Below, piece by piece: positions 30,301 through 57,666 of a stretch of 64,000 nt of DNA (its first letter is position 1; every line of letters begins with the position of its first letter). The notes beneath the pieces are model-generated. The model saw nothing but the letters and a program-made list of their open reading frames with translations, made no database searches and was not told the DNA's origin. The translations under genes were made by a program, and so were the position numbers. The stretch covers positions 248,001 to 312,000 of the IMG/VR virus record IMGVR_UViG_3300042502_001233. One strand, written 5' to 3'.

Positions 30301-32416
30301 CTTTTTGGACTTTTTGATTGTCATTCCCACCTTGTTTTTCTTCACTCATATGATTAAAATTTAATATTTCTTATGTCGTCAAAGTTTATATCGGACAACG
30401 ACTCAATAGGTTTAGGTTGATTTGTCTCAATAAATTTTTCTAATTCAAGCGTTTTGTTGAACGCTTCAAAATCAAACGTTTCTAGATACTTAGCAAGATA
30501 AGTCATAGAAGGTACGTATCTATAATACCTAGTCAAATCAGATAAACTTATCTTTATGATTTTACAACCATCAATTGTGCATAACGGTGAGTAATCTGAA
30601 ACCTTAAAACCATTCTTGATGTCGAATTCTTTACGTATAAACTTAGTCATATAAGAATTTACCAAAGAAATAATATCATCGTAGGTTGTGATTTTGTGTT
30701 TGTTAGCTTTCCATGATTCCAACACTCTGTTGCACTCACGTACCGTATTCTCAACGATATGTTTACATTTTACTTTTTGGGCGTCAGACCCATATACAAC
30801 TGCATCCATAATTTATTGTTTTTTCTTTCTTTCTTCGTCTTCTCTGTCATGTTCTATACCCAGAACATGCATTAATAATTCAAAAACACCAATGATAACC
30901 ATCATTATCATGGCACCTATCAAGATAATAACCTCTGGGGCTATTAACAATAGCACTAATAATATAACTAACCAAATCATCTTTATTTAGTTTTTTGTAT
31001 CACAAAACAAAATTTACCAGTTACACTGTTAGCGCTGTAAGTGTTTCCACCAGCATAACCAGCCACATGTTGTGCAGTTACTGATACTATTGACCAACCT
31101 TTTTCCAACCAATCATTAATGGTTTTCTCTGATTCTGTAATTATTACTTTTTGTTCCATAGTTATTTGTTTTTAATTATTTCGTAGTGACCACAAACTGT
31201 AATTTCTCGACCATAAGCGTCTATGAACACTATACAGTTATAGTCAAGAACTTCATACTTATTAGTACTATACCCTTGATTATCAGATACAATTCTATAT
31301 TTATGTGTTGGCATCGACCTTAATGTAGTATATATCATACCGAGTGCACAACATACCAAAAACGCTGCTAATAGTTTTAAACTTATTTGTTTCATGATTA
31401 ATTTTTTTTAACGTGTATGGTTGCTAATCGGTCAATGTATCTTCGACAGTTGCCGAAATCTATAATGATAAACTCACTAAAGAAAGATATCACTACACCA
31501 ACTTTTGAACCTTCTTCTCTAAAATTTACTTTTACGGTATCACCTTCTCTCGGAAATGTTTCTGTCCACATATAAATTATTTTTACAAATATACAATTAA
31601 TTTTTTAATTCTGCAACTTTTTATTAGGGCATAACCCAAAATAATTTTCCTTGGTCCCAACATACTGGTATGTTAGATAGAGGTTGTTCTATAGGAACTT
31701 TATATATCACCACGATACCATTATCAGTTTGCATGGTTACCGTTCTGGTGTGTTTACGTGTTGGTTCTGCATACAACACTTCTCCGTTGATTCGAATTGA
31801 TTCTTTGCAAATGTTCTGGTTAGATTTACAAGACATTACAATTACGCCCAACATAACTAAAATAAACTTATTCATTGGTAATTTCATTAGCGGTTAAAAA
31901 ATCTTTATCAACTTCTTTCCAATTATCTCTAATCCATTTGGCCACATGAATAAAACCAGCTTTGGCTTTGGTGAACTGTTCATCGGTAAGACTACCTTTC
32001 TCTGACACAATACCAAAAGCAAATCTTAGACCATTGCTTAGCATGGCTTCATCACTAAAGTTAAGTGTTTTGATTACTGGTATGTTGTCAGGGTCTGGAA
32101 TACCACCAAACTCTTGTAGTGCTGCCTTGGCGTGGTCGTTTAATTTTTTGAACATCTCTTGTCCTTTTATCTTATCAGCCACTTCTTCTAATTTGTCGCT
32201 TTGTACCACAATAGCCATTGGTTCAAATTCACCACCATTGTGTAAGTTAGGACAATCTTTGATATTGAACCAACCCATTTTGTTTTCCCTAGCGTATTGA
32301 GTACAATTTGGGTGTAACATAATTTGTTCATAATGTTGTTCATCTGCATCCTCTACTTTGTAACGTACTTCCCAAGTCCCCTTGTTGAAGATGTACTGTC
32401 CGTTTACTTTGTTCAT
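24314..32416 (-). CDS. Block of ~18 hypothetical genes, several membrane or lipoproteins; 24992 has DCVVRAI...GHA (papain-like Cys/His pattern)
   Basis: ORF track; signal peptides and lipoboxes in 24314, 26163, 28377, 31624. Confidence 0.65.
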
Positions 32417-32468
32417 GTTTATGTTATTAATTTATGCAAATATACTAAATAAAAATAATATAACGAAA

Positions 32469-33275
32469 TTAAATCGGTAAATTAATTTTACTTAAAATTT
32501 GATTTGATACGTGTGTATATATTTCAGTGGTTTTTACGTTAGCATGACCTAAACATTTTTGTATAATTCTTAAATCAGTACCAGCTTCCAACAGAGCGGT
32601 GGCTTGTGAATGTCTTAACAAATGAAAATGATATTCTTCACCAATATATTTTTTAACTATTTCATTACAACTTCTATGAGAATATTGTAAATTGTTACCT
32701 TGACCATTAAACAAATATTCTTTAGGTTTATACACTTTAAAATATTCACGCAAAAGATTTAAAACAATTGGTGACAAGGGAACGAATCTATCTTTTCTTC
32801 CTTTACTGTTTTTAATGTGTATTAACATTCGTTTACTATCAATATCTTCAATTTTTAAATTACACAATTCAGAAACTCGCATTCCTGTTGAATACGCTAA
32901 TGTAAGTATAGCTTTGTGTTTAATGTTTTCGATTTTAGATAATTTTTCGAGCAGAAACTCCTTTTCGATTATTTTTGGTAATTTTTTCTCTTTTCGTGGT
33001 CTTTTAAACGAAACCTTATCGTATTTTCTTTCTAATCCGTATTTATATAAAAACCTTATTGCGTTTATAACTTGATTTTGTTGTGAAACAGACGTGAATT
33101 TGTAATTATCTAAGTAATTCTGAAAATCTTTAGAATTTAAGTGAGCGACTTGTTTGTCCCCTACATTTTTAATGAAAGAGATAATGTGATACATATAATT
33201 TTCTTTTGTTCGTGGCGAGTAGTTAAGATATATAAACTTTTGTTCACAAATCTTTATAATTTTTTCGTTTAACAT
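32469..33275 (-). CDS. Integron-integrase-like tyrosine recombinase (short form, no IntI insertion)
   Basis: SQQNQVINAIRFLY, RPRKEKKLP, GMRVSE, KGRKDR, HLLRHS, LGH, TTEIYTHV; likely start MLNEK at 33275. Confidence 0.9.
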   Translation of the reverse strand: MLNEKIIKICEQKFIYLNYSPRTKENYMYHIISFIKNVGDKQVAHLNSKDFQNYLDNYKFTSVSQQNQVINAIRFLYKYGLERKYDKVSFKRPRKEKKLPKIIEKEFLLEKLSKIENIKHKAILTLAYSTGMRVSELCNLKIEDIDSKRMLIHIKNSKGRKDRFVPLSPIVLNLLREYFKVYKPKEYLFNGQGNNLQYSHRSCNEIVKKYIGEEYHFHLLRHSQATALLEAGTDLRIIQKCLGHANVKTTEIYTHVSNQILSKINLPI

Positions 33276-33294
33276 ACTGATTTTATTAATGGTT

Positions 33295-33325
33295 TGAGAT
33301 GTTTTTACATATATTATAGTTAGCA
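33295..33325 (+). other. Candidate attI-like site (crossover G|TT at 33319)
   Basis: First cassette starts GTTAGCACC just upstream of the integrase, with no attC hairpin to its left. Confidence 0.65.
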
Positions 33326-33331
33326 CCAATA

Positions 33332-33808
33332 CTACGATAGTGCTTCGATTTCAAGTATCATATCTTTATTTTTTACAGAAAAAACAAATTCACCTACATA
33401 TCCTGCGTCTTCTCCGTAAATAGCATCGCAACTATTCAATTCAGTTAGAAATTTGCTTGATAAGTCTTCTCCTAAAACATTTGAAAATAAATCAAGTTCT
33501 TCTTTGTAATTTGATGTAATTGCTATATCACCGATTACGAATAATCCTTGTTGTCTATTAAATCTATTTCCGTTTTTACCAGTTTTTTCACTATAAATTT
33601 TATTCCATTTATCTAATTTTAGAATATTATAATTTGTTGTATCTATGGTTATTTTATAACAATTATCACCGAATTTTTTAGCGTAATCTAAGTTAACCGC
33701 TAAATAATCAGCACCACTTCGGTTTTTATCATAAACACCATCAACACATTTATACACTGTGGTTTTACCAAAGTTTTTAACTTTATCTATTAATTCTCTT
33801 ATTTCCAT
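33332..33808 (-). CDS. Cassette 1 gene; possible ART-like fold
   Basis: VYK...YLAVNLDYAKKFG; the fold call is weak. Confidence 0.6.
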   Translation of the reverse strand: MEIRELIDKVKNFGKTTVYKCVDGVYDKNRSGADYLAVNLDYAKKFGDNCYKITIDTTNYNILKLDKWNKIYSEKTGKNGNRFNRQQGLFVIGDIAITSNYKEELDLFSNVLGEDLSSKFLTELNSCDAIYGEDAGYVGEFVFSVKNKDMILEIEALS

Positions 33809-33862
33809 ATTTTTACTTATAAATATTCCAAATTTAAAATTCTACCAAATAAACCGTAATGG

Positions 33863-33957
33863 TGCTAACAAGGTGTATAAGAAAGTTTGCTATCAAGTTC
33901 AGTGGTAAATTTGAAAGTTCCTATAAGCAAACCTTCTCATACACCCAATCGTTATAT
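33863..33957 (+). repeat. attC-like site 1 (family A)
   Basis: TAAC 33866, arms GGTGTATAAGAAAGTTTGCT / AGCAAACCTTCTCATACACC, GTT 33951. Confidence 0.9.
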
Positions 33958-33972
33958 TCAATATCAAAAATT

Positions 33973-34329
33973 TTATGGTTTTATAGAAATTGAATTAAAC
34001 CACTTGAGTTCAGATGTTAATTCATTCAACTTACCTTCGTATTTAACTATTTTATTTTCGTTCAATGGTTCGGATATTTTATAACCACCATCAATCTTTA
34101 TATGTTTAGTTTCTTTTTGATTTAGTTTGGAATGAATATTACCAATCCTCTCATTTATTGATTTAACATTCATATCAATAACCCATCTAACATCATCTAT
34201 ATTATGTTTAGATAATTCTTCAACAACTCCATTCCATTTAGTAATGAGTTTTGTTTCTAAATCAAAAACTAAACCACGTTGTCCGCCAAGACAACCATCT
34301 TCTTCAAACCATTCAATTTCTTTTTTCAT
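33973..34329 (-). CDS. Cassette 2 gene
   Basis: ORF fills the cassette. Confidence 0.75.
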   Translation of the reverse strand: MKKEIEWFEEDGCLGGQRGLVFDLETKLITKWNGVVEELSKHNIDDVRWVIDMNVKSINERIGNIHSKLNQKETKHIKIDGGYKISEPLNENKIVKYEGKLNELTSELKWFNSISIKP

Positions 34330-34352
34330 ATGTATAAATTTTTTGATACTAA

Positions 34353-34406
34353 ATATAACAAATGATAAACAACATTAAAACGATTGTTTATCATCAGACG
34401 TTAGTA
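34353..34406 (+). repeat. attC-like site 2 (short family B)
   Basis: TAAC 34356, ATGATAAACAA / TTGTTTATCAT, GTT 34400. Confidence 0.85.
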
Positions 34407-34435
34407 GCAAATTGTAAAACTTGCCACCGCACCAA

Positions 34436-34714
34436 TTACATATATTGTTCCTTTTTGAAATTTATGAATGATAGTTTTTCGTCAACACATTTCTCACAAA
34501 TTTGTGCAGTCCATTTCTGCGTATCTTTTCCGCTATGGTAGCCCCAATGTGTTTCTAACTTCATAAATTCAAAACTGTAATATGGCTCACCGTTATCAAC
34601 TCTAACATTATTATCTATTTCACCTTCATCAACCTTACAACTTTTGCCACAGCAATCACAAATCACATCTGTAATAACTTCGGTCTTTTTGTTTTGTGTT
34701 TCCTTTGTTTCCAT
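34436..34714 (-). CDS. Cassette 3 gene, Zn-finger (CDCC...CEKC)
   Basis: ORF track. Confidence 0.75.
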   Translation of the reverse strand: METKETQNKKTEVITDVICDCCGKSCKVDEGEIDNNVRVDNGEPYYSFEFMKLETHWGYHSGKDTQKWTAQICEKCVDEKLSFINFKKEQYM

Positions 34715-34765
34715 TTATATTTTAGTTTATCGTTTTCCTACGCTCAAAAAAGTTTTACAATCAGC

Positions 34766-34820
34766 TACTAACAGCGTATAAAAAACATTAAAACGATTTT
34801 TTATACGCAAACCGTTATAA
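34766..34820 (+). repeat. attC-like site 3 (family B)
   Basis: TAAC 34769, GCGTATAAAAAA / TTTTTTATACGC, same acattaaaacga loop as site 2, GTT 34814. Confidence 0.85.
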
Positions 34821-34826
34821 CCAATA

Positions 34827-36731
34827 CTACTTTTCGTCTCCGTAAATTGGCATATATCTTTCATCGTAACCAACGATTTTTCTATGTTTATTATCATCAA
34901 TGTATTTATCATCAGCATTTTTTTGTTGGTCAAACTCTTCTTTAAGTTTGATTAACCCATCTCTTAGTTCTTTTGGCAAAAGAGATTCATCAGCTAAAAT
35001 TTCTTGTCTGATTTGTTCGTGTTTTTGGTGAATATTATTCCCATGTTCAATTATTTTTTCTATTTTATTCTCCATATTTTTAATTTTTAAAACATTCAAT
35101 TAGTTTAATACTTGGTAAATTCCAAACATCAATTATTTTATAATCTGAACCATCAGTATTTGTTAGTATGATATTATTCGGTTCAATTTTGAAATCTGTT
35201 CTTATACAAATACCAAGGTTTTTATCGTTTTCTCTAATAAGAAAAAATGGTTCAAAACTTTTACTAACATCAGCTTTGTATCTTTTATAATTATAAACAT
35301 CATGTTCACCTATAATATGAAAATCTTTAAAATTATCAAATATAACACAAATCTGTCCAGATGCTATAACAACATCTAAATCAAATTCTTTCATATAATA
35401 CCTAACGAAACTATTTAAACTTTCGTTATGTTCAAGTTGTGTAATATCATTATTTGGTTTTTTATAATCCCAAACATAATCTTTTACTTTATCAACATTT
35501 TTTTCATATTCCTTAAATGTTTTATATTCAAGTCTTTTTAATATTTCTTCCATATTTTAATATTTTAACAATAAATCATTCAATTCTATATCTAAACCAA
35601 ATAATGATTTTTCAATCACTTCACGTATTGTTAATGTTGGTTCATCTTTCATAATATTTAAACAAATTAACATTAGCTCATTTGTTCTATCTGTTTGGTT
35701 GGTGAATTTAATCACATAATCAATATATTTTAAATCATCAAAATGTTCCATATTTTTAATTTTCATATATTTTAAAAATTTCTTCAATTTTAACTATTTT
35801 ATTACCAAATAAAACTTTATCACCAATAAACTCGTATTTAGAAATAAGATAATTTTCAAACCAATGTAAAAAAATAACAATATCTTGGTATGAATATTCA
35901 CTTTCAATATCCATAAATATTTTATGGTCTAAAAACATCCCAATAGGGTAGTAAACCCAATCATCTGGATTTCTACTATCTACTTCATCCACTAATTCCC
36001 TACAAAAAGATAAATCATTAAAATGATGATTATATACGTGAGGCTCATACCCACCAATTTTATTTTTATATGGTAAATTTAAACTCTTAATAAAATAAGG
36101 TTTTTTTTCATAATTGACATTAGATTCATATAATGAATTACGAAGTTTTAGTTTAAGTTTTTCTAACTTTTTATCGTAGTTGGTATTTGTCTTCGCAACA
36201 AATCCTTTATTTTTAAATTCTTCAACTTCTTCATCTGAACAATCTTCAACCCATTTAATATCAATATCAATAAGTTCTGTTTCTACTGAAGTGTCATCGT
36301 TTATTTTAGTTTCTCCACGATAGGCAAATGGTATTAAACCATTTTCTGGTATTTTAAAATTTTTTTCCATATTTTATAAATTTATTTTATTGATTAATTG
36401 GATATATGAGTTAATAGGTAATTTTTCAGATAAATATTTTTTTATTATTTCTGAATTATTGTATTTTTTTGGGTTATCCAAAAACTCAAAAAGAATTTCT
36501 TTAAATAAATCTTTTTCAATATCACTTTCACTACAATAACTCATAAAATCACCAAATGATGGTATGAAAGTATTAATATCAGTCATTATTATTTATATGT
36601 TTTAGTATTTCTTTAATAACATCTACCCATTGATTGGTTTCAGTTATATGTTTAATTTTGTTTTCTGAAAAAGAAGATACTTGTCTAAGACCTTCTTTAT
36701 CTGTAATAATAATCTCCATTTTATTTTCCAT
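34827..36731 (-). CDS. Cassette 4: operon of six ORFs (34827, 35080, 35557, 35756, 36374 and a short ORF near 36586-36731)
   Basis: ORF track; own TATATTTG promoter box near 36746. Confidence 0.7.
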
Positions 36732-36800
36732 AATTTATTTTTTTTACAAATATACTAATTATTATTCAATTAATCAAGTTTTATCTTAAAATCACCGTAC

Positions 36801-36824
36801 TGGTTATAACAAATGTTATAACCA
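36801..36824 (+). repeat. Collapsed attC-like site 4
   Basis: tggttaTAAC-aaat-GTTataacca; no hairpin body. Confidence 0.7.
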
Positions 36825-36827
36825 ATA

Positions 36828-37849
36828 CTACTTTTCGTCTTCGTAAATCGGCATAAAGTTTTCAGAATAACCAACTATTTTCCTATGTTTATTCTCTTCG
36901 ATATATTTATCATTAGCTATTTTTTGTTGGTCAAATTTTTCTTTAAGTTTTATTAACTCATCCTTTAGTTCTTTTGGTAAAAGAGACTCATCAGCTAAAA
37001 TTTCTTGTCTGATTTGTTCATGTTTTTGGTGAATACTATTTCCATATTCAATTATTTTTTTTATGTTATTCATGATTAAACGTATATTTTATATTTATTT
37101 TCTTTATAAGTTATTAATAATAATTCTCTAGGTATAACAGATAATGTATCTAACCAATTATGTCTTTCAGTTTCTGTTTTCTCCAAATATATATCTTCTC
37201 TAATGGTGTTTAAGCAGTCCGTTCTTATTATTGTGTTGAAATTGTCTGATAAAACCAATCTATTTTCTAATTCTAAATTAGTTTTAATAACGTTTAAACC
37301 AATACTTTGATATTGGTTCGTGGTTTTTGTGATTTCATTTATAAAATCACACATTTTTAAGTGCTTTAAAGATGGTTCATTTTTAGTAACTAAACTAAAA
37401 AATTCAAAATCAGTATCTTTATTCAACCAATCATACTTTTTAATCGAAATTATTAGTTTTAATTTATCACGATATTCATCAACTTCAGTTTTTGAAAGTT
37501 CTCCGACCATAACCCACGTTAAATCTTCAATAAATGTTTCATTACCATCAATGGGTGTTAACTTAGCTTTCGGAACGCCAATCATTGTTTCTTGTTCATA
37601 TTTATTACCACATTCTATTAACGATTTATTTGGATAACTTGTTTTTGTATCAGTTTTATAAATAAAATTAACTTTCCTTGGAATAAAATATTCTTCCAAT
37701 TCTTTAAATATTTCTGGATACCTTTCTTTTAAATATGAGTCACATTTTACGTAGTCAATACCATATCTAAAAGTCGTTTTATGTAATGCTAAAGAATAAC
37801 TTTTAATCACATCAATCAAATTATTTATATTATATATGCTTTTTTTCAT
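36828..37849 (-). CDS. Cassette 5: two ORFs (36828, paralog of 34827; 37076)
   Basis: ORF track; ends nearly identical to cassette 4. Confidence 0.75.
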
Positions 37850-37921
37850 AATTTATTTTTTTTACAAATATACTAATAATTATTCAATTAGTCAAGTTTT
37901 ATCTTAAATTCACCGTACTGG

Positions 37922-38015
37922 TTATAACAAGGTGTATAAGAAAGTTTGCTATTAAGTTTAGTTGTAATTTGAAAGTTCATCTAAGCAAACCTTCTCATAC
38001 ACCCAATCGTTATGT
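37922..38015 (+). repeat. attC-like site 5 (family A)
   Basis: TAAC 37925, GTT 38009. Confidence 0.9.
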
Positions 38016-38091
38016 GTAAGTGTGAGTTCCCTCTCCGAATTAACTTTTGTGTTAGAAAATTTTAGAAAAAAGAACCCACCGCACATATTTT

Positions 38092-39033
38092 TTATTTTTT
38101 TTCAGTTATTAAATTATTATCTAAAGCATAAAATAATTGTATAAAGTATCTTTTATCTTTTAATTTCACATCTCCAGTATAACTATCATATGTTCTACCG
38201 TTTGTCATTCTTATTTTCGATAATGGTTGAGTTCTTAATAATTGAATGTCTTTTTCATTCATATTAAAGTATGATTCACCATCACAGTTAAATTTTTTCC
38301 AAGATTTTTTAGTAATCTTTTCACCATTTTCAAAAAGAATAATAATCTCATCATTTTCATTACATCCACCAATACCTACCATTGTAGTAGTAATCATTGA
38401 AAATGATAGTTTATCAGAGTTTATGTGTGTTGATATTCTGAATCCAATTTTTCCAACATCGTTAGCACAGATAAAATCTCTACTTCCATATACATATGTT
38501 TCCCCACTCATAACATCAGTTTCCTTTACTACATAAACACTGTCTTTTGATGTTTGTCCAAAAGATACTATTGTCATTAAACACATCATTAGTGTCATCA
38601 TCATTACTTTTAAATTTTTCATTTTTATTTATTTTAAGTTAATTATTTTTTAATTTCTACAATCAATCATTACAGTTCCACCACCACAAATATACACATC
38701 ATTAACGTGAGTGTTATTTTTATAATGTTCTTTTAAATCACTTTTTAATGTCTCATATTCATTACCATTTACAACTTTTTCAATTCTAACATTAATTAAT
38801 CTACCAGTTGGCATTACTTTATATGAACCATCCTTTGTGTATTTTGTATATTCCTGACCACCTAACATCCCATAACTTTGGTATGTGGTTTGTAAAGATT
38901 CAACAAACTCATCAGTTATTTGATACAACTCTGTGTTTGGTTCTATAATGTTTTTCACTTTATCACCAACACCATTACAAGACATCATAAAAACAGCCAA
39001 TAATCCCATTAAAATTAATTTTACTTTTTTCAT
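38092..39033 (-). CDS. Cassette 6: secreted protein (38092) and lipoprotein (38650)
   Basis: Signal peptide ...VSFGQ; lipobox FMMSC; TACCTTTG box near 39096. Confidence 0.75.
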
Positions 39034-39202
39034 TTTATTTGTTTTTTTAATTTACCTACTCTAAATCAGTTTTCGGTTTCCCTGTTTTTGTTTTACAAAG
39101 GTAAGTATAATTTCTTAAATAAAAAAATATTTCCCCTTCTTTTTTTCTAAAATTTTCTTTTAGTGCTTCAATTGAAGTTCATCGCTTAATAATCACACCT
39201 AC

Positions 39203-39297
39203 ACATAACAAGGTGTATAAGAAAGTTTGCTGTAAAGTTTGGTGGTAAAATTGAAAGTTCGTCTAAGCAAACCTTCTCATACACCCAACCGTTAGCA
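39203..39297 (+). repeat. attC-like site 6 (family A)
   Basis: TAAC 39206, GTT 39291. Confidence 0.9.
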
Positions 39298-39303
39298 CCA
39301 ATA

Positions 39304-39732
39304 CTACGTCCATTGCGGAGAATCAGGCATTTCATATCCAAGTTCTTGTAATTTCAGGTATCCGAAAAAGTGATTTTTATTATATCCTGATATTTCGTCA
39401 TCTGAACTATATTCAGTAAACCAAACAGATTTATGGTGAAACTGCATTCTACACTTTGATATAGTAGTAAAATAACCATCACTTACGGTATCTTGGCTAA
39501 GTAGCTCTACATCAATTGAACAATCCCCATACTTTCTAAATGATTCATAAAAATCAAGCCCAAGTATTCCGTTTCTTGAAATTATAGTGTTAACTGTCAA
39601 AGGGTGTATTCTGTTAATAACTGAAATTACATCTTCGTCAGTAATATCAATTAGTCGTTTCAAAACCGTACTGGTGCTAACAGCACCTATACCCAATTGG
39701 GCAGTTTCGTTGTTTTTTGAAGTTTCTTCCAT
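39304..39732 (-). CDS. Cassette 7 gene (start inside attC7)
   Basis: N-terminal TAQLGIGAVS encoded by the attC arm. Confidence 0.75.
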   Translation of the reverse strand: MEETSKNNETAQLGIGAVSTSTVLKRLIDITDEDVISVINRIHPLTVNTIISRNGILGLDFYESFRKYGDCSIDVELLSQDTVSDGYFTTISKCRMQFHHKSVWFTEYSSDDEISGYNKNHFFGYLKLQELGYEMPDSPQWT

Positions 39733-39807
39733 TTTATTAAGTTTTATCTGTTATTGAAAATTTGTGCTATTTATTGCCCAACTGGGCATAGCTACAATCC
39801 GTTAGCA
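39675..39807 (+). repeat. attC-like site 7 (family C)
   Basis: TAAC 39678, CTATACCCAATTGGGCA / TGCCCAACTGGGCATAG, GTT 39801. Confidence 0.88.
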
Positions 39808-40095
39808 GTAATCAGGATGAACTGCTAAATAATGTAAGTAAATAGAATGAATTTTTGGCTTACCAATACAAGTTAATAAACTAACTTGTTCTGCATTAAT
39901 AAATTCTGCTATTGGAATTTTACCTGAAATATCAATTCGTAATATTTTAATTGGCTCTTTAGATTTATCAAAAGTGTTGTAAAAAATATTTTTTTTAATT
40001 AAATCTATTTCTTTTAAAAATAAATCCGAAAAGACTACTGCTAACACATTATTGTCGCAATTGGCGGTTTTGGTACTCTCTGAATGTTTTGTCAT
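39802..40095 (-). CDS. Cassette 8 gene (start inside attC8, stop at the crossover TTA)
   Basis: ORF track. Confidence 0.7.
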   Translation of the reverse strand: MTKHSESTKTANCDNNVLAVVFSDLFLKEIDLIKKNIFYNTFDKSKEPIKILRIDISGKIPIAEFINAEQVSLLTCIGKPKIHSIYLHYLAVHPDYC

Positions 40096-40172
40096 TACTT
40101 TTATTTTTAGTGATTAATCAATAGTTTGTTTTGTGTTTGTCGCCACCTGACGACAATAATCCAACGTTAAAT
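40039..40172 (+). repeat. attC-like site 8
   Basis: TAAC 40042, ATTATTGTCG / CGACAATAAT, GTT 40166. Confidence 0.85.
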
Positions 40173-40499
40173 GCAAGTTATCCCAAAATCACGTTTAAGA
40201 ATTTTGATACAATTTTCCTTATTAAGTGATGAAATATAAATGCAATTTTCTTTTTTAATAACTTTTTTATTTTTCTTTTTAAAATTACCATTAACAGCAT
40301 CGTTCCAATGAATCTCTTTTATTTCAAGCTCGAAAACGGCTAATTCAATAGTTCTTTTATTTAAATCAAACTCAAACAAAATGTGATTTTCGTGTGGTAT
40401 AATTCTTGAATCAAAAACTTTTTGAATTTCTGCTTGTTGCTGTTTAGTGATTTCAATTTTATCTTTTACTTTGTCTTTTTCAAAATCGGATAATCTCAT
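40167..40499 (-). CDS. Cassette 9 gene
   Basis: Stop at the crossover TTA. Confidence 0.75.
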   Translation of the reverse strand: MRLSDFEKDKVKDKIEITKQQQAEIQKVFDSRIIPHENHILFEFDLNKRTIELAVFELEIKEIHWNDAVNGNFKKKNKKVIKKENCIYISSLNKENCIKILKRDFGITCI

Positions 40500-40510
40500 A
40501 TTTAACCTGC

Positions 40511-40643
40511 ATTTAACAGCCGTTTGGCAAGATTAGTGCTTTAGGGCTTAATTTATAATTGTCTTGTATTTGTTATTTAAGTGATAAAATGATAGTTTTA
40601 CGCTTATTTATCACTAACCTCGCCAAGCGTGAAAACGTTAGCA
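40511..40643 (+). repeat. attC-like site 9
   Basis: TAAC 40514, TTGGCAAGATTAGTG / CACTAACCTCGCCAA, GTT 40637. Confidence 0.85.
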
Positions 40644-40982
40644 GTCATTGCTACCATACGTTTCCAAATCGAAAATTTCGCCAACTTCATTTCTATATTG
40701 AAATTTAAAATTGTCTGTTAAATTTCGTGTCAATGATGCACTTGAAAATACTTTTTTATTTTGAACACAACTTGCAATATCTTCAATCTTTGCTCTACCA
40801 AAATCGTAGCTATCACCGTGCAAAGTAAATATTGAATTATCTCTATCAAGTGTCCACCATCCACCGCCTTTAACCTTTGAAATATCGGTTGCAAGTTGTT
40901 TATGATAAGTACATTTTGCCACTATTAAGCAGTCGCCTTCTTGGTCATCTGTTTCGATTATAAATTTTGGGAATACATCCAT
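40638..40982 (-). CDS. Cassette 10 gene
   Basis: Likely start MDVFPK; GGGWW...G.S.DFG motif. Confidence 0.75.
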   Translation of the reverse strand: MDVFPKFIIETDDQEGDCLIVAKCTYHKQLATDISKVKGGGWWTLDRDNSIFTLHGDSYDFGRAKIEDIASCVQNKKVFSSASLTRNLTDNFKFQYRNEVGEIFDLETYGSNDC

Positions 40983-41021
40983 TTTTAAATTGAGTTTTGT
41001 TGTTAATAATCCGCAACGAAC

Positions 41022-41152
41022 TGCTAACATAGTGTTGCCAAAATGGGGGCAGACGTGCATTTAATGAACATTTGTACTGTATTCAGCAGTAGTGCTTTTA
41101 ATGGGCTTTTGTACTATAAATCCCCTACTTCGGCAACACTCAGCCGTTAGCA
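41022..41152 (+). repeat. attC-like site 10
   Basis: TAAC 41025, AGTGTTGCC / GGCAACACT, GTT 41146. Confidence 0.85.
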
Positions 41153-41162
41153 GTAATTATTG

Positions 41163-41387
41163 CTAACCGTTGTACATAGAAAAAGCCACTACATCGAAGT
41201 CGCCTAAAAAATCTTCTTTCTTTCTTGTCACGATAACTTGAACTTGTATTTCTTCATTTTCATTTATAACTAAACTTCCACAAGAGGTTGAAAAAGCATA
41301 GTTTTCTTGGTTTTCTGCTAATTTTTCAGCACATTCTTTGATTGCTCCTTTCAAATAAAGCGAATCGATTAATTTTTCTAAAGCCAT
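41163..41387 (-). CDS. Cassette 11 gene
   Basis: Likely start MALEK. Confidence 0.7.
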   Translation of the reverse strand: MALEKLIDSLYLKGAIKECAEKLAENQENYAFSTSCGSLVINENEEIQVQVIVTRKKEDFLGDFDVVAFSMYNG

Positions 41388-41408
41388 AATATTTGGTATT
41401 ATAACTAC

Positions 41409-41539
41409 TGCTAACATTCGCTATACAATAGTTGGGTTAATTTTTAAATTTAAAGTTCAGTTTGTACTTTTTTAATCAGTCTTTAATCGAAGTTTGGGTC
41501 TGTACCTTTCCCAACCATCGTATAGCTTTTCCGTTATAA
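41409..41539 (+). repeat. attC-like site 11
   Basis: TAAC 41412, GCTATACAATAGTTGGG / CCCAACCATCGTATAGC, GTT 41533. Confidence 0.85.
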
Positions 41540-41544
41540 GCCAT

Positions 41545-41793
41545 TTAAAGCGGAAACCTACTACGACAATATTCTCCATCATTTTTTTCGTAAAAACTTC
41601 TTGCATCTTCACGAGTTCCTACAAAAACACATCTATCCTCTTGCATAATATAAACACATTCTCTATTCCATAAAGCAAGTGGTATTTTAAACCATTTCGC
41701 ACCATCTTCAATATCATCGTGTACATGAAGAGAAAAACGGCTTATAACAGCGGTTTTGTCGCATTGTGGCACTTGGTCTTTTTCTGTATTCAT
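41545..41793 (-). CDS. Cassette 12 gene (start inside attC12)
   Basis: MNTEKDQVPQCDKTAVISR. Confidence 0.7.
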   Translation of the reverse strand: MNTEKDQVPQCDKTAVISRFSLHVHDDIEDGAKWFKIPLALWNRECVYIMQEDRCVFVGTREDARSFYEKNDGEYCRSRFPL

Positions 41794-41877
41794 AGTTTTT
41801 AATTTAATTATTGTTTTATTTTTGTTAAGTTTGGTCTTTAATCGCCACAACGACGACAAAGCCACAGGACGTTAGTA
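41742..41877 (+). repeat. attC-like site 12
   Basis: TAAC 41745, GTT 41871. Confidence 0.85.
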
Positions 41878-41882
41878 GCCAT

Positions 41883-42086
41883 TTAAGAAAGTGCTTTTTT
41901 CAACGCTTTCAATATTCTTTGGCACTCTTTCTTTTCTTCACCAACATTATTCCAAACAAGAAACTCATAAGTACTTATCATTCCTTCTGCTGTATCTCGT
42001 CTTATTTTAACATTAACAAAACGGCTACTAACAGCACCTATACCCAATTGGGTAGTTTCTTGGTTATTCAAATTTTCGTGTTCCAT
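41883..42086 (-). CDS. Cassette 13 gene (start inside attC13)
   Basis: MEHENLNNQETTQLGIGAVSSR. Confidence 0.7.
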   Translation of the reverse strand: MEHENLNNQETTQLGIGAVSSRFVNVKIRRDTAEGMISTYEFLVWNNVGEEKKECQRILKALKKALS

Positions 42087-42158
42087 ATTTACTTTATTTT
42101 AAGTTGATAATTTTGTGTTTCAAATCGCCCAACTGGGCATAGCTGCAAAACGTTAGCC
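42026..42158 (+). repeat. attC-like site 13 (family C)
   Basis: TAAC 42029, arms nearly identical to attC7, GTT 42152. Confidence 0.88.
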
Positions 42159-42164
42159 GTAATT

Positions 42165-42431
42165 CTAATCACGCCAAGTGATGTGCATTGCTTCTAACTT
42201 ATCCCCAAGTATCGGACTGCCATAGTTTTCAAACTTCATTTTAATTGAAGGATAAACTTCCAATCCATTTGGACATTGTGTTTTTAATGGTAGCTTTCGT
42301 TTATCTTCTGAAATTCGTAATGCTTCTAAAATGAAGTCATTCAAACTTTTATCTTCGGAAGAAGAACTACGGCTAACAACGTATTGCTGAACATTGCCAG
42401 CTTCATCGGTAATTTGAACTTTGTATTCCAT
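42165..42431 (-). CDS. Cassette 14 gene (start inside attC14)
   Basis: MEYKVQITDEAGNVQQYVVSRS. Confidence 0.7.
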   Translation of the reverse strand: MEYKVQITDEAGNVQQYVVSRSSSSEDKSLNDFILEALRISEDKRKLPLKTQCPNGLEVYPSIKMKFENYGSPILGDKLEAMHITWRD

Positions 42432-42504
42432 ATCAACCTTTTATTTTAAATTAAACATTTGTGCTTCTAAATTGGCAACGTCAGCAATACGCAAAACGTT
42501 ATAC
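42371..42504 (+). repeat. attC-like site 14
   Basis: TAAC 42374, CGTATTGCTGA / TCAGCAATACG, GTT 42498. Confidence 0.85.
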
Positions 42505-42520
42505 ACAATATTTTTACCAA

Positions 42521-43020
42521 TCACACCGCATAAATCCATAATTGAGTTATTTGTTCGTCAGTAATATTTTCTGGTGTTATATCATATTCACCATATTTTT
42601 TCATATATGTTATATATTCTAATTTCATATCTTTGGATAACGAGTTCCAAAAATTTAATGATTTTTGTCTGTCTTCCATTTCTTCATCATTCATAACTCT
42701 AATTATTTTATGTTCTAATAATTGTGGTGCAATAATACCTTGATTATATAACCAACTCGCTAACTTAAATTGTAGTCTTACTAATAGTGTTTTCATTTCT
42801 TATTTATTATTTATTAAAATTACTCGAAAATAGGTAAAAAAGTTTCGTTATCATAACCAATAATCTTTTTACCGTTTTTTATATTATCGTTTATCCATTT
42901 ATCTTCTTCAGACCACTTTGTTTCAAATTCTGTTTTTAAATTATTCATTCGGTCTTTTAAATCTTGTGGGATATTATCATTATTTAATATCTCATTTCTT
43001 AATTGTTCGTGTTTTTCCAT
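42521..43020 (-). CDS. Cassette 15: two ORFs (42521; 42820, paralog of 34827/36828)
   Basis: ORF track; TATATTTG box near 43035. Confidence 0.7.
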
Positions 43021-43085
43021 AATTCTATTTTTTACAAATATACTAATTTATTTCTAATTTATCAACCCTCCCACAAAAATACTGT

Positions 43086-43179
43086 GTATAACAAGGTGTA
43101 TAAGAAAGTTTGCTATCAGCATTTGTGGTAATTTTAAAGTTCATCTAAGCAAACCTTCTTATACACCCAACCGTTATAG
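43086..43179 (+). repeat. attC-like site 15 (family A)
   Basis: TAAC 43089, GTT 43173. Confidence 0.9.
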
Positions 43180-43208
43180 GAAATTTTATTTTTTTTCTCA
43201 CCGCACCG

Positions 43209-43511
43209 TTAGCATCTTGGAACACCTTCTGCTGGGTCATACCATCCGTGAATATTAAATTCGTGCTTTGGCGAAGGTTTTTTACCCCATTTAGCAACTG
43301 CTTCTTCTTCTGTTTTTGGAAACGGAAATTGATTATGAATAACATTTAGTTCTTGTTGGTGCTTTTCATCACCCATACTTGGGTCAATTTCGTGTTTAAA
43401 AACTAAATTAAGATGCTTCTTAATCATTGTCGTTTGTTCTTTGGTTATTGTTTCAGCGTTGCTTACTTCAAAAAAACCTTGTAGCCAATAGGCAAAATCT
43501 CTACTTGTCAT
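43209..43511 (-). CDS. Cassette 16 gene (MTSRDFAYWLQGFFE, a phage-type motif)
   Basis: F.YWLQG..E...IK.HL.LVF motif. Confidence 0.75.
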   Translation of the reverse strand: MTSRDFAYWLQGFFEVSNAETITKEQTTMIKKHLNLVFKHEIDPSMGDEKHQQELNVIHNQFPFPKTEEEAVAKWGKKPSPKHEFNIHGWYDPAEGVPRC

Positions 43512-43557
43512 ATTTTTAAATTTGTTTATTGCCAACCCACAAAAAAATAAAACTATC

Positions 43558-43653
43558 CTATAACACGGGTTTGACGTAATGCCACCAGATAGTTTAGGCT
43601 AAATTTAAAGTTCGTGCAAGGTGGCACTAACGCCAAGCCCGAAACCGTTATGA
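43558..43653 (+). repeat. attC-like site 16 (last)
   Basis: TAAC 43561, CGGGTTTGACGTAATGCCAC / GTGGCACTAACGCCAAGCCCG, GTT 43647. Confidence 0.85.
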
Positions 43654-44118
43654 AAACCATTCTGGTAATTCTCTACCTTTCCATTTGGCTAATTTCCTTT
43701 TCTCTGTTCTATAATATTCTCTGTAGCTATCCACAGCATCACCAACCTTGCATTCGTCTGGCATAGCCAAAGCAAATGGTGTTATATCACTATTGTATTT
43801 CAATTTAGGTTTATGTATTAAACACCATTCAATTACCGCTTGTGACTTATGTCTTTTTTCGTAACGATATGTGTATTCTTTGCACAATTCAAGTCCCAAA
43901 TCACAAAGCCAAATGTAGTTTTCCATACATTCTCTGGCCCATATTGCACTTGGATGATTTTTATGGGATAACTTGTATGGTATATCATACCCAGATTCTA
44001 CTACGTGATGAACGCCACACAACAATTGTGCATATTCAACTATCATCTTGGTACAATGGCGATTTACATGGTATTTTGCACATTTTTTAACATCTAAATC
44101 TAAAACGAATATGTTCAT
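43648..44118 (-). CDS. Pyrimidine-dimer DNA glycosylase / endonuclease V family protein
   Basis: MNIF.LD...CA.YH...H..KM.VE.AQLL...H.NHP...W...EY..RY...H. Confidence 0.8.
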   Translation of the reverse strand: MNIFVLDLDVKKCAKYHVNRHCTKMIVEYAQLLCGVHHVVESGYDIPYKLSHKNHPSAIWARECMENYIWLCDLGLELCKEYTYRYEKRHKSQAVIEWCLIHKPKLKYNSDITPFALAMPDECKVGDAVDSYREYYRTEKRKLAKWKGRELPEWFS

Positions 44119-44168
44119 AATTTTAATTTTTATTATACAAAGATACTATTTTATTTTAAATTACAAAA

Positions 44169-45137
44169 TTAATATCTATATTTTTTAAAAATATTTTCAG
44201 AATTTTTTGTTAATTTCACAATACCAGATGAAATTAATTCAATTATTTTTTGTTTTGTAACATATGGTGATTCTATTTCAGTTATAATTGAATAATTTTC
44301 ACCAAAAATTTCTTTACCTTTTTGTATTTTTATCGGGTTTACACCGTATTCTAACAGACTAGTTGGTTTTATTTCATAAATGAAATCACCATCAGTGAAA
44401 TCTGGGAAATATGTTTTTATTTTATCTTTATAAAAATATTTAACAGCGTATTTTTTTATTTCACAACTAGTAAATATTTTATCACTATTATTAATTAAAA
44501 AAGATAATTCTAGTGAACTTCTAAAATAAAGATTGTTATACCAACCACTAACATGTTTAACATTATTTGATGTTGTTATGTATTTTTCTCTATCTAAATT
44601 TTCAGTATAGAACTTATTTAGAGATTCACTAATTTTATTTTTAGTCTCGTTATTATGTTTTAAAGTGTTATTTTTCCTTTTTGATTCAATAATATTTTTT
44701 TGCCACTCATTCGTTCTTTCAAGTTTAGAACCAGTTAATTTGTCAATAACTTTATTTTTTATTTCATCTACTTTCATTGGGTTATTAACACCATATTTTT
44801 GTAAATTAGAAATTTCCCAATTTTTTTGTTTAATTTTTTGGTTAGTGTTAGAAACCCTTTTATCAACCATATCTTTAGATTGAGTTTTACCTAACCAATA
44901 ATCTCTTTTAATTGTTTTGTTTTTGTTCCTACATTCAATAGAACAATTTTTTAAATAACCAACACCTACATTTCTGTATGTAGTTTCTTTACCACAAACA
45001 CAACATTCACCGTCACCTTTAATTTTTAAATATTTGTCATAGTATTCTCTACCATTTAGATTGTGTTTAAAATTAACATGTGTTGTTAAAGCTTTTAAGT
45101 TTTTGAATTCTTCATTACAAATTTTACAAGTTTCCAT
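44169..45137 (-). CDS. Homing endonuclease (C2H2 finger, NUMOD3-like repeats, TnsA-like PD-(D/E)XK)
   Basis: FRSSLE...YFPDF...YEIKP. Confidence 0.7.
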   Translation of the reverse strand: METCKICNEEFKNLKALTTHVNFKHNLNGREYYDKYLKIKGDGECCVCGKETTYRNVGVGYLKNCSIECRNKNKTIKRDYWLGKTQSKDMVDKRVSNTNQKIKQKNWEISNLQKYGVNNPMKVDEIKNKVIDKLTGSKLERTNEWQKNIIESKRKNNTLKHNNETKNKISESLNKFYTENLDREKYITTSNNVKHVSGWYNNLYFRSSLELSFLINNSDKIFTSCEIKKYAVKYFYKDKIKTYFPDFTDGDFIYEIKPTSLLEYGVNPIKIQKGKEIFGENYSIITEIESPYVTKQKIIELISSGIVKLTKNSENIFKKYRY

Positions 45138-45172
45138 ATCTTTTTATTTATAAATATACGGAACTTTGAAAA

Positions 45173-45259
45173 AGTTTCAAGTATCATCTTAACAACATGT
45201 TTATCATTGTGATATTGTGCACATTTTTTTGTGTTTGTGTCCAGTACAAATATATTCAT
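45173..45259 (-). pseudogene. Stranded 5' end of the glycosylase gene (MNIFVLDTNTKKCAQYHNDKHVVKMILET)
   Basis: Manual translation aligns to the N-terminus of 43648. Confidence 0.85.
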
Positions 45260-51300: not shown

Positions 51301-51923
51301 ATTTAAATCTTCATAATCTTTTTGACTAGAAGGTTTATCCTCGTTATCATCTGGATAGTCATTGGCTGGGTTTTTCTTGTTTAATGGTTTTTTAGTCTCT
51401 TCGCTGTTCTTGCCAGCTTCTAACATATTACCCAATAAACCTTCTCTAACCAATTGTTGTATTAATATCTTGCTCATCGTATTTTATTTTATTATAAATA
51501 TCATGAAACATGATAAAAATCAACTAACTACTGCATTTTTTTACCATAACTTTTACTGGTGATAGCTCTTTTAGGTATCGAATAATCATATTGAGTCGAA
51601 TCAAACACATCATCTGGTGATTCATACAATATCTTATTCATATCTTCAAGACTCAATTCAACATTATAACCAGTGGCTTCATAAATTTTGTAACGGAAAT
51701 CAGTGATTCGGTTGTTGACCTCAATAGCTTTATTTTCTGACCACTTTTCCCATATTGGGAACAAAGTATCTTCATCAATATTAAAAATGCTCATAATCGT
51801 TTGCATCACACTTCTGAGGCCAACTTCTGAACCATCGAAGTTATCCACTAACTTATACGACACCAAAGTTGATAAGGTGAATATATAGTTGTTTTCTAGA
51901 TATTTCGTAATCATTTGTTCCAT
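48303..51923 (-). CDS. Block of ~9 hypothetical genes
   Basis: ORF track. Confidence 0.65.
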
Positions 51924-57535: not shown

Positions 57536-57592
57536 TTTACTTCTTTCTAAATAAATATCTAGAAATTATAAAAAGTACAAAAAAGTTTAAGG

Positions 57593-57666
57593 TGGAAGTA
57601 ACGGGACTCGAACCCGTGTTCTCGCAACATCAGCCGCTTTATACTATCCTATTGTACTATACTCCC
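57593..57666 (-). tRNA. tRNA-like RNA with G3:U70 and A73, irregular anticodon loop (CTGATG)
   Basis: GGGAGTA/TACTTCC-A, D arm GTAC/GTAT, T arm ACGGG-TTCGAGT-CCCGT. Confidence 0.7.

Follow-up and report, generated by a model that had tools for sequence, protein, structure and literature searches.

An integron-like gene-cassette array next to a tyrosine recombinase in a freshwater jumbo phage

Does the series of repeats found in a 362-kb freshwater jumbo phage represent an integron, and if so, does it belong to the phage or was it taken from a host? The region was analyzed within a window of 64,000 nucleotides (positions 248,001 to 312,000 of IMG/VR record IMGVR_UViG_3300042502_001233), to which the coordinates below refer. 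A first-pass annotation based on the sequence alone had delimited the repeats at 33863-43179, described them as attC families, and proposed, by analogy with sedentary integrons such as those with Vibrio VCRs, that they form a resident array whose cassettes are made in the phage lineage. All the sequence features that it listed were found in the DNA, whereas its reading of them held only in part. The phage identity of the genome is supported by a CheckV value of 100% and by synteny with the complete relative G306, which has direct terminal repeats; the flanks encode a sigma factor, homing endonucleases and a nuclease.

The array and its neighbouring recombinase

Sixteen hairpin sites of 48-, 88- and 125-nt classes lie at 33866-43650. 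Sites 1, 5, 6 and 15 (family A) are 88-89-nt repeats with 88-91% identity, sites 2 and 3 share the loop ATCGTTTTAATGT, and sites 7 and 13 share arms with 80-82% identity. The sequence GTTAGCACCAATACTACG occurs at 33319 and 39291 (100%), and CCGTAATGGTGCTAAC and CCGTACTGGTGCTAAC occur at 33855-33870 and 39667-39682. The motif ATATTTATA precedes the ATG of cassette 1 by 18 nt and those of five other genes of the window by 20-24 nt; in the whole genome there are 56 copies on the gene strand against about 25 expected, 38 of them within 40 nt of an ORF start. A scan for pairing arms placed 14 of its 16 genome-wide hits in this 10 kb, against 2-4 hits in shuffled genomes, and all 10 covariance-model hits in the 362-kb genome lie at 33863-43653. 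The limits of the first-pass annotation need two corrections, because the array runs one site further, to 43650, and it also includes the cassette at 33320-33951 and the junction at 33319. The features are as follows, with a slash marking junctions and crossover points.

32469-33275, minus strand: tyrosine recombinase of 268 aa, with the catalytic R, K, HxxR, H and Y present and without the IntI-specific insertion.
33276-33322, minus strand: attI-like junction, reading GGTGCTAAC/TATAATATAT on the gene strand, followed by the leader of the recombinase gene; the inferred crossover is TAA/C at 33320/33319.
33320-33951, minus strand: cassette 1, nearest the recombinase, with family-A site 1 (33866-33954) and ORF 33332-33808 (158 aa), which gave no Pfam or PHROG match.
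33952-34400, minus strand: cassette 2, with a 48-nt site (34356-34403) and ORF 33973-34329 (118 aa).
34401-34814, minus strand: cassette 3, with a 49-nt site (34769-34817) and ORF 34436-34714 (92 aa).
34815-36815, minus strand: cassette 4, with a putative minimal site (TAAC-ATTT-GTTA, 36807-36818), a promoter leader and six ORFs (from 36579-36731 to 34827-35099).
36816-38009, minus strand: cassette 5, with a family-A site (37925-38012), a TTGAC...TAtaTTTG promoter leader and ORFs 37076-37849 (257 aa) and 36828-37073 (81 aa).
38010-39291, minus strand: cassette 6, with a family-A site (39206-39294) and ORFs 38650-39033 (127 aa, lipoprotein-like N-terminus) and 38092-38622 (176 aa, signal-peptide-like N-terminus), both N-termini judged by eye from the sequence; a weak DUF805b RNA hit lies at 39053-39086.
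39292-43174, minus strand: cassettes 7-15, with eight sites of 125-130 nt (39678-39804, 40042-40169, 40514-40640, 41025-41149, 41412-41536, 41745-41874, 42029-42155, 42374-42501), each followed by one ORF of 67-142 aa, and then family-A site 15 (43089-43176) with a promoter and ORFs 42820-43020 and 42521-42796; several 125-nt sites hold the ATG and about 20 codons of the next ORF, and ORF 40167-40499 matches a PHROG of unknown function.
43175-43650, minus strand: cassette 16, farthest from the recombinase, with a 90-nt site (43561-43650) and ORF 43209-43511 (100 aa); the stop codon of the flanking gene lies inside its TAAC box.
43648-44118, minus strand: flanking gene, not a cassette, encoding a phrog_624 DNA-binding protein whose homologue lies downstream of the recombinase in the related loci L048 and L016.

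Profile searches assigned the recombinase to PF00589 (135 bits) and PF13495. However, it scored only 158 bits, in two pieces, with the integron integrase model of NCBIfam (integrase_gron, TIGR02249; cutoff 265). The additional domain of integron integrases, which the IntegronFinder / Messier-Roy definition of an integron requires, is an insertion of about 35-50 aa with the ALER(K)YP motif between the catalytic patches. In the alignment to VchIntIA (2a3v), residues 200-233 of the phage enzyme stand against 184-264, so that about 47 residues are missing, and a gap is likewise found opposite the insertion of IntI1 and of a Bacteroidia IntI. More than 120 clusters above 70% identity were found, all of 266-268 aa. 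Although database sources name the protein XerD, it scored 151-155 bits with the XerC/XerD models, far below their cutoffs of 330-335, and it was separated from Bacteroidia XerC and XerD with 100/100 support; in a small tree it fell on the IntI side of this split (100/100).

Comparison with related phages and with Bacteroidia

Forty-odd related phage contigs of up to 343 kb show the same layout with almost wholly different genes, and neighbouring genes were not shared between loci. In about 25 related viral loci (numbered with L) that include upstream sequence, the sites lie only upstream of the recombinase and the junction TAAC/TATWATATAT is conserved, while the sequence to its left is unrelated. 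In G306 the sites again cluster upstream of the recombinase, although a few solitary copies lie outside arrays, for example at 21532-21579 of G306. Family A and the 48-nt family recur in these phages at 85-98% identity, and the site of cassette 2 is 94-98% identical in L015, L017, L018, L023 and L039. A cassette homologous to cassette 5 was found in another array, L126, where a family-A site, the same leader and the homologous ORFs are kept as one unit.

Breakpoints between near-identical phages fall exactly at TAAC, although all of them come from metagenome assemblies. L008 and L009 are 100% identical over 10.8 kb and diverge at TAAC/, L015 and L017 also diverge at the junction, and a further breakpoint at TAACG/ was seen between L049 and L051. 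L024 and L037 share a 495-bp unit with 99% identity that runs from the TAAC of a site through the ORF to the next TAACGGTTG, whereas their recombinase genes are only 75% identical. The ends flanking an ORF block are complementary at 7.27 of 10 positions (76 of 109 score at least 7), as expected for excised circles, whereas the two flanks of one site in the array score 3.36 and random pairs 3.49.

The structure of the sites is conserved in spite of their variable sequence. In the alignment 97.8% of cells are paired, a percentage inflated because the sites were picked by a pairing scan; the compensatory changes, found in 14 of 21 pairs, are not affected by this selection. There are 135 double-change cells against 33.5 in shuffles, and none of 500 shuffles reached the observed value. 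TAACG...TGTT is invariant and G.T is fixed at two positions, but only (T)AAC and GTT(A) of the RYYYAAC/GTTRRRY consensus of attC sites are kept. The gene-sense strand is the more stable fold in 134 of 146 sites, yet this G.T asymmetry could equally reflect selection on the mRNA because the folding strand is also the coding strand.

We then asked whether family-A sites occur mainly in host chromosomes, which the first-pass annotation had set as the condition against its proposal. An exact family-A pattern hit only 14 contigs among the genomes of 185,579 species; all are short, mis-binned MAG contigs from incompatible lineages, and several share cassette genes with the viral loci. No recombinase of the phage type was found in 401 Bacteroidia genomes, and a canonical IntI passed its cutoff in 1 of 301. 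However, the site design is not restricted to phages. Sites of 125-127 nt with the same design (TAACG, bulge, stem, loop with a GCACAAA-type motif, stem, TGTTA) form arrays in Bacteroidia chromosomes beside a recombinase that also lacks the IntI insertion and is 40-51% identical to the phage enzyme. The bacterial recombinase has 350-400 aa, with an extra N-terminal region of about 110 aa that the phage enzyme lacks, and lies upstream of the cassette genes. In the bacterial arrays 25 of 31 intervals have their genes on the strand opposite the TAACG strand (6 of 31 on it), whereas phage ORFs are on the TAACG strand in 81 of 92 intervals, and in 14 of 15 in the window. The 88- and 48-nt classes were not seen on large bacterial contigs. 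We found no publication describing either the phage system or these chromosomal arrays.

Based on these results, the proposal that the array is resident in the phage lineage, and is not a block recently taken from a host, is supported by the recurrence of the layout and of the site families, by the phage-type promoters of the cassettes and by the reversed gene-to-site polarity, so that the cassettes cannot simply be captured bacterial cassettes. That the cassettes are made in the phage remains an inference. The description as an integron with homogeneous attCs is only partly right, since the IntI-specific domain is absent and the array is not homogeneous like VCRs: 4 of the 16 sites belong to family A and the rest fall in two other size classes and many sequence families.

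A putative recombination platform and alternative explanations

We consider it likely that the window holds the variable part of a phage-borne, integron-like site-specific recombination platform formed by the recombinase, the insertion site directly upstream of its gene and the 16 cassettes. The comparisons show that each cassette is one folded-DNA site plus the ORF or ORFs downstream of it on the same strand, that site structure is conserved while sequence varies, that cassette boundaries lie in the TAAC box, that the two ends of a cassette are complementary, and that content turns over next to the recombinase gene; the recombination reaction itself, its reactive strand and the source of cassette expression are inferred. 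In this view the recombinase would excise a cassette as a circle by recombining the TAAC boxes of two sites and then insert circles at the junction next to its own gene. The reactive strand would be the gene-sense strand, folded as 5'-TAAC-G, a 3-4-nt bulge, a long stem with fixed G.T wobbles, a loop, the return stem and TGTTA-3'. Because the genes point toward the recombinase, expression would not come from a platform promoter but from signals inside the cassette: host-type TTTG/TAnnTTTG promoters, the ATATTTATA motif or a start codon inside the site loop. Against this explanation, the evidence is comparative rather than experimental or read-level, and the one comparison with Logan contigs, which are short, gave ambiguous joints. 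Moreover, the recombinase lacks the insertion that IntI reportedly needs to recognise folded attC, according to structural and mutational work on VchIntIA and VCRs, the bulge lies on the arm opposite to the extrahelical bases of canonical attC, and the minimal site 4 and the multi-gene cassettes are not explained.

An unlikely but better surviving alternative is that the hairpins are regulatory RNA or DNA elements (terminators, translation operators or promoter modules) shuffled by homologous recombination, as with the PeSL cassettes of T4-type phages, the recombinase being an unrelated lysogeny or dimer-resolution enzyme. In its favour, the folding strand is the mRNA strand, loops hold ribosome-binding regions and start codons, three cassettes share a promoter leader, and depth at the sites is 10-100 times that of unique DNA, so substrates for homologous recombination abound. 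However, the site sequences covary rather than stay identical, which is poor for homologous recombination, the breakpoints sit at the 4-5-nt TAAC box, including at the junction, which has no hairpin, the cassette ends are complementary only in the circular form, and the sites lie only upstream of the recombinase in every locus. Also, the nearest cultured relative, the integrase of Cellulophaga phage Ingeline, has no such array.

It is less likely still that this is a canonical integron fragment or CALIN, that is, a block of attC cassettes captured from a host chromosome and serviced, if at all, by a host IntI. The AAC...GTT boxes, the imperfect palindromes, the published phage CALINs of two or more attC sites (PMC9892861) and the 125-nt sites of Bacteroidia chromosomes would agree with it, but a dedicated recombinase and a conserved junction accompany the array in about 25 phage loci, and the near absence of canonical IntI in the Bacteroidia examined, the reversed polarity, the restriction of the 88- and 48-nt classes to phage contigs or short MAG contigs and the phage promoters all speak against it. 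Non-autonomous mobile hairpins (MITE- or PATE-like) inserted next to TAAC by a transposase encoded elsewhere are very unlikely since, in spite of the short, structured, multi-copy units, the families shared among genomes and the few solitary copies, nearly all copies are in one co-oriented array beside the recombinase, the moving units include the downstream ORFs, and no candidate transposase was seen among the flanking genes scanned.

Relationship to integrons and other known systems

Integrons (class 1, and the Vibrio chromosomal integron with VchIntIA and VCRs) likewise have a tyrosine recombinase next to an insertion site and a cluster of cassettes bounded by imperfect palindromes with AAC and GTT boxes, whose structure is conserved more than their sequence, with ends complementary in the circular form and new content next to the recombinase gene. 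The conserved junction and its divergence points agree with an attI site with crossover in the G/TT or AA/C box, on comparative evidence. In integrons the integrase recombines folded single-stranded attC with double-stranded attI; for the phage enzyme a folded reactive strand is inferred. Yet, besides the absence of the ALERKYP region, the phage sites have a one-sided 3-4-nt bulge between the R and L stems on the 5' arm of the folding strand, with invariant G.T wobbles, in place of the extrahelical bases on the 3' arm of the bottom strand and the two-sided unpaired central spacer of canonical attC such as attC(aadA7). Integron cassettes are mostly promoterless, with ORFs directed away from attI and read from Pc, whereas the phage genes lie on the folding strand and point toward the junction and the recombinase, each site precedes its gene and often encodes its start, and cassettes have their own promoters. 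The carrier is a virulent-looking jumbo phage.

attC-type sites inside phage genomes, including a Polaribacter (Bacteroidota) phage, are already known (Qi et al. 2023, PMC9892861). That study reports 17 CALINs, each with at least two sites and no integrase, plus three complete canonical integrons and one In0 in temperate phages, but nothing resembling a clade-wide array of 16 sites with its own non-IntI recombinase. The PeSL mobile regulatory cassettes of T4-type phages (Arbiol et al. 2010) also place stem-loop-plus-promoter repeats beside small accessory genes in hyperplastic regions and allow modular shuffling; however, they reportedly act by homologous recombination, without a dedicated recombinase, insertion site or TAAC crossover, whereas here the sequences covary and a recombinase is always adjacent. 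Xer/dif and pdif modules share a short, simple recombinase of Xer-like size, but the phage enzyme lies outside the XerC/XerD clade and its sites are 48-130-nt hairpins rather than 28-bp dif sites.

The platform is apparently resident in a clade of freshwater jumbo phages that probably infect Bacteroidota, and it is related to an apparently undescribed system, found in many Bacteroidia chromosomes, that is wired differently. A bolder reading, which we regard as possible but somewhat less likely than not, is that a whole sister lineage of integrons exists whose recombinases never had, or do without, the IntI insertion, present in roughly a third of the sampled Bacteroidia genomes and, in a streamlined form, in this phage clade. 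In the phage form each recombination site would carry the expression signals and first codons of the gene behind it, so that cassettes would be self-expressing and built within the phage gene pool, and canonical IntI may be a derived branch of this group.

Phage genome, hairpin sites and recombinase

The window is bases 248001-312000 of a 362,018-bp IMG/VR virus record that is rated complete by CheckV, and nearly all genes lie on the minus strand. The flanks of the array encode phage-type proteins, namely a nuclease, three HNH/homing-endonuclease-like proteins, an RNA-polymerase sigma factor and a phrog_624 DNA-binding protein. A search for the terminase family PF17289 gave no hit in the phage, and its phage identity was shown instead by synteny with G306, a 310,542-bp phage genome with direct terminal repeats, with which it shares 104 of 441 ORFs at a median identity of 42%. 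Two window proteins were of little use as clade markers, since the nuclease was absent from five relatives and the sigma factor was present in one, at 35%. The sequencing runs that hold the stretch are lake-water metagenomes from at least six studies (2020-2024). About 35 near-identical promoters of the Bacteroidota type (TTTG, about 19 nt, TAnnTTTG) precede small genes, and the nearest GenBank phage recombinases, at 39-40% identity, are from Cellulophaga and Polaribacter phages. The host is therefore inferred to be, probably, a member of the Bacteroidota. The features referred to below are the following (window positions):

1-32000, gene strand: about 35 promoters (TTTG, about 19 nt, TAtaTTTGCA) before small ORFs; this looks like an early-gene region read by the host polymerase
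8886-8964: solitary hit of the pairing scan outside the array
32469-33275, minus: tyrosine recombinase gene
33866-43650: sixteen hairpin sites
36807-36818: the minimal site TAAC-ATTT-GTTA
39053-39086, minus: weak match to the Rfam DUF805b RNA motif
43648-45259: a 54-aa ORF and the phrog_624 gene, flanking the far end of the array
44169-45137, 46472-47605 and 59683-60543: HNH/homing-endonuclease-like genes near the array, one of them directly adjoining the flank gene at the far end
51923-52801: sigma factor gene
57591-57666, minus: tRNA-like gene called by ARAGORN, with an irregular anticodon loop (tRNA-???)

The observation made in the first-pass annotation held, as each of the repeats it listed is present where it was placed. 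Read on the gene strand, a site consists of 5'-xTAAC-G, 3-4 unpaired bases, a stem of 12-25 bp, a loop of 11-100 nt, the return stem and T-GTTAx-3'. Of the sixteen sites, four are of 88-89 nt (family A), one of 90 nt, two of 48-49 nt and eight of 125-130 nt. The remaining one, the minimal site, has no body and is flanked by 17-nt complementary arms; its cassette shares its leader (86%) and its last ORF (88%) with cassette 5, as if a family-A body had been deleted. A pairing scan placed 14 of its 16 genome-wide hits in this region, against 2-4 hits in shuffled genomes, and a covariance model built from 42 sites of the 88-nt class placed all 10 of its hits in the 362-kb genome here. The solitary scan hit at 8886-8964 looks like a terminator hairpin beside promoters and not like a site.

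The only PF00589 gene of the genome is found at one end of the array. Its homologues are 266-268 aa long, which fixes the start at the ATG at 33275, and all catalytic residues are present. Directly upstream, the gene strand reads GGTGCTAAC|TATAATATAT, and in about 25 related loci the part to the right of TAAC is conserved as TATWATATAT whereas the part to the left is unrelated.

In the 42-site alignment TAACG and TGTT are invariant, 97.8% of the cells are paired and 14 of 21 pairs show changes on both sides. There are 135 double-change cells, against 33.5 in shuffles (0 of 500 shuffles reach the observed number) and 9-31 in slid controls. The sites are thus selected for structure, although the pairing scan that chose them biases the percentage paired, but not the compensatory changes. 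Two G.T wobbles are almost never replaced by Watson-Crick pairs (42 of 42 and 40 of 42 sites), and wobbles make the gene strand the more stable fold in 134 of 146 sites.

In the search for cassette functions, twenty proteins had no Pfam match and three matched PHROGs of unknown function, while a protein atlas returned only a Prim-Pol lead scoring 0.89, below its own reliability line and unsupported by Pfam. No Rfam family reached its threshold in 32000-45000; the weak DUF805b match (29.3 bits, gathering score 35.6) lies in the leader of the lipoprotein-like gene of cassette 6.

Distribution in related phages and boundaries of the cassettes

A search of IMG/VR with the recombinase gave 48 loci (57-85% identity) on contigs of up to 310 kb. 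The protein database holds at least 120 clusters above 70% identity, all of them metagenomic and on contigs that, beyond this phage's own record, reach 343 kb. Wherever upstream sequence exists, sites of the same three size classes lie upstream of the recombinase and essentially never downstream, so that the layout is a property of a phage clade. In G306, a second group of four sites lies 11-17 kb upstream of the main array (170791-173663 of its contig C1), and a solitary 48-nt site (21532-21579) is found in the structural-gene region. Between the genome of this record (G000) and G306 the recombinase is the best-conserved shared protein, with 73% identity against at most 57% for the other large (250 aa or longer) shared ORFs listed, which hints at strong constraint or at exchange of the module between phages. 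The two genes that flank the far end of the array lie downstream of the recombinase in a relative (positions 11640-12110 of locus L048 and 6543-7013 of locus L016), and the array-plus-recombinase module therefore sits at different places in different phages.

Neighbouring genes are not shared between loci on either side of the recombinase, whereas the site families recur at 85-98% identity. Two loci, L008 and L009, are 100% identical for 10.8 kb from the recombinase onward and diverge exactly after TAAC, and L015 and L017 do the same. Loci L024 and L037 have recombinase genes that are 75% identical, yet they share a 495-bp unit at 99% which begins at the TAAC of a 48-nt site, runs through the ORF behind it and ends at TAACGGTTG of the next site. 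A homologue (51%) of the 257-aa cassette protein of the window was located in another array on a 328.5-kb contig, where it is again preceded by a family-A site at about 90% identity and by the same promoter leader. In locus L017, two identical 128-nt sites (2205-2332 and 2596-2723) carry tRNA T-arm-like sequences (GGTTCGATTCC, GGTTCGACTCC) in their loops.

Across 109 cassettes, the 10 nt after GTTA and the 10 nt before the next TAAC, which are the two ends of one ORF block, are reverse complements at 7.27 of 10 positions. In contrast, the two flanks of one site in the array score 3.36 and random pairs 3.49. This is the pattern that excised circles predict, and it generalises a remark of the first-pass annotation on the shared ends of cassettes 1 and 7. 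The last ORF before the recombinase is followed by TAAC and the conserved junction with no site body between them. Together, these results place the crossover in the 5' TAAC box of the gene strand and make a cassette a site plus its downstream ORFs. When the contigs of four lake runs were aligned to the region, joints at 34403 and a contig break at 34812 fitted the box boundaries, but the sides measure 21-35 nt and the contigs are short, and we do not count them as evidence. In four runs (X2, X4, X7 and X8), contig depth over the family-A and 48-nt sites (33779-34566) is 10-100 times that of the neighbouring unique cassette DNA, and these site families are therefore carried by many other genomes in the same lakes.

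Comparison with integrons and with Bacteroidia chromosomes

The recombinase lacks the IntI-specific insertion. Against VchIntIA, 34 residues stand where IntI has 81; the ALERKYP block of IntI1 and of a Bacteroidia IntI faces a gap; and the protein fails the integron-integrase model with 158 bits against 265. In a small tree it is separated from XerC/XerD (100/100) and forms one clade with the other phage enzymes (100/99), next to the integrase of Cellulophaga phage Ingeline, whereas canonical IntI sits among Bacteroidia long recombinases on the other branch. This is only a lead because sampling is thin and the root is arbitrary. Ingeline, the nearest cultured relative of the recombinase at 40%, has no array. 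The sites also differ from those of integrons, as their unpaired bases form a one-sided bulge on the 5' arm. The genes lie on the folding strand and point toward the recombinase (14 of 15 intervals in the window and 81 of 92 in relatives). In 33 of 71 sites of the 125-nt class the ATG of the next ORF lies inside the site, and in 25 of those 33 the GTT of the box is read as a valine codon. Three cassettes carry the same host-type promoter as flank genes, and cassette 1 carries ATATTTATA.

A predominance of family-A sites in host chromosomes would have spoken against a phage-lineage array. The exact family-A pattern was found on 14 contigs among the genomes of 185,579 species, all of them MAG contigs of 1-67 kb assigned to Methanolobus, Woesearchaeota, Patescibacteria, Saccharibacteria, Clostridia, Gammaproteobacteria, Flavobacteriaceae and others. 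Nearly all hold further sites of the same classes and several share cassette genes with the viral loci, and we read them as mis-binned phage fragments. A recombinase search in five of the MAGs holding family-A sites returned only relatives at 36-42%.

However, the covariance model hit 53 of 151 sampled Bacteroidia genomes. On megabase contigs there are arrays of 125-127-nt sites of the same TAACG...TGTTA design, for example 13 or more in 19 kb of contig C35 of genome G153 and 9 in contig C1 of G133 (loci L107-L112 and L116-L120, from the Bacteroidia genomes G014, G047, G112, G133 and G153). Beside four of the five arrays inspected lies a tyrosine recombinase of 369-402 aa that is co-oriented with the cassette genes, has an extra N-terminal region and again has no IntI insertion. 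Relatives of the phage enzyme at 40-51% identity, and none closer, occur in 121 of 401 Bacteroidia genomes, a tally that includes one unpublished genome (G099) on which no claim rests. In nine further genomes the recombinase and model hits lie on the same contig, on opposite strands. Canonical IntI passed its cutoff in 1 of 301 genomes, and the canonical IntI locus of one Bacteroidia genome (L121) had no sites of this design within 9 kb. In the bacterial arrays the genes lie on the strand opposite the TAACG strand (25 of 31 intervals), as in ordinary integrons. So the design is shared with the probable host phylum, but the phage cassettes are a separate population with reversed gene polarity, and two site classes were not seen on large bacterial contigs.

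Concerning previous reports, a few canonical integrons and 17 small attC clusters have been described in phages (Qi et al. 2023), and IntegronFinder 2.0 reports almost no integrons in Bacteroidetes. Searches for phage-encoded or integron-like systems with such recombinases returned nothing relevant, and we found no description of the Bacteroidia arrays in the papers searched, although most subscription journals fell outside this literature and absence is not proof.

Significance of the platform

The finding is real and of wider interest than first stated. Its initial interpretation, a resident array of the phage lineage with integron-type cassettes, is partly supported: the array is a resident, phage-lineage, integron-like cassette platform, but one with a non-IntI recombinase and cassettes that would be self-expressing, and it has a widespread bacterial counterpart. 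While the structure of the sites, their layout and the cassette boundaries rest on sequence comparison, the recombination mechanism, the reactive strand and the functions of the cassettes are inferred.

Integrons are taken to be bacterial devices defined by an integrase with a special domain for reading folded attC DNA. How that recognition evolved, where cassettes come from and whether viruses run such systems themselves are long-standing questions, and this locus bears on all three. It gives a natural recombinase-and-site pair that lacks the defining domain, which makes the requirement for that domain directly testable. The bacterial counterpart suggests that current integron finders may miss an entire phylum's worth of arrays. 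The locus also gives a cassette architecture in which site and gene start are fused, a clue to how cassettes are built, and a phage clade in which accessory genes, probably host-takeover or counter-defence genes, are swapped as cassettes.
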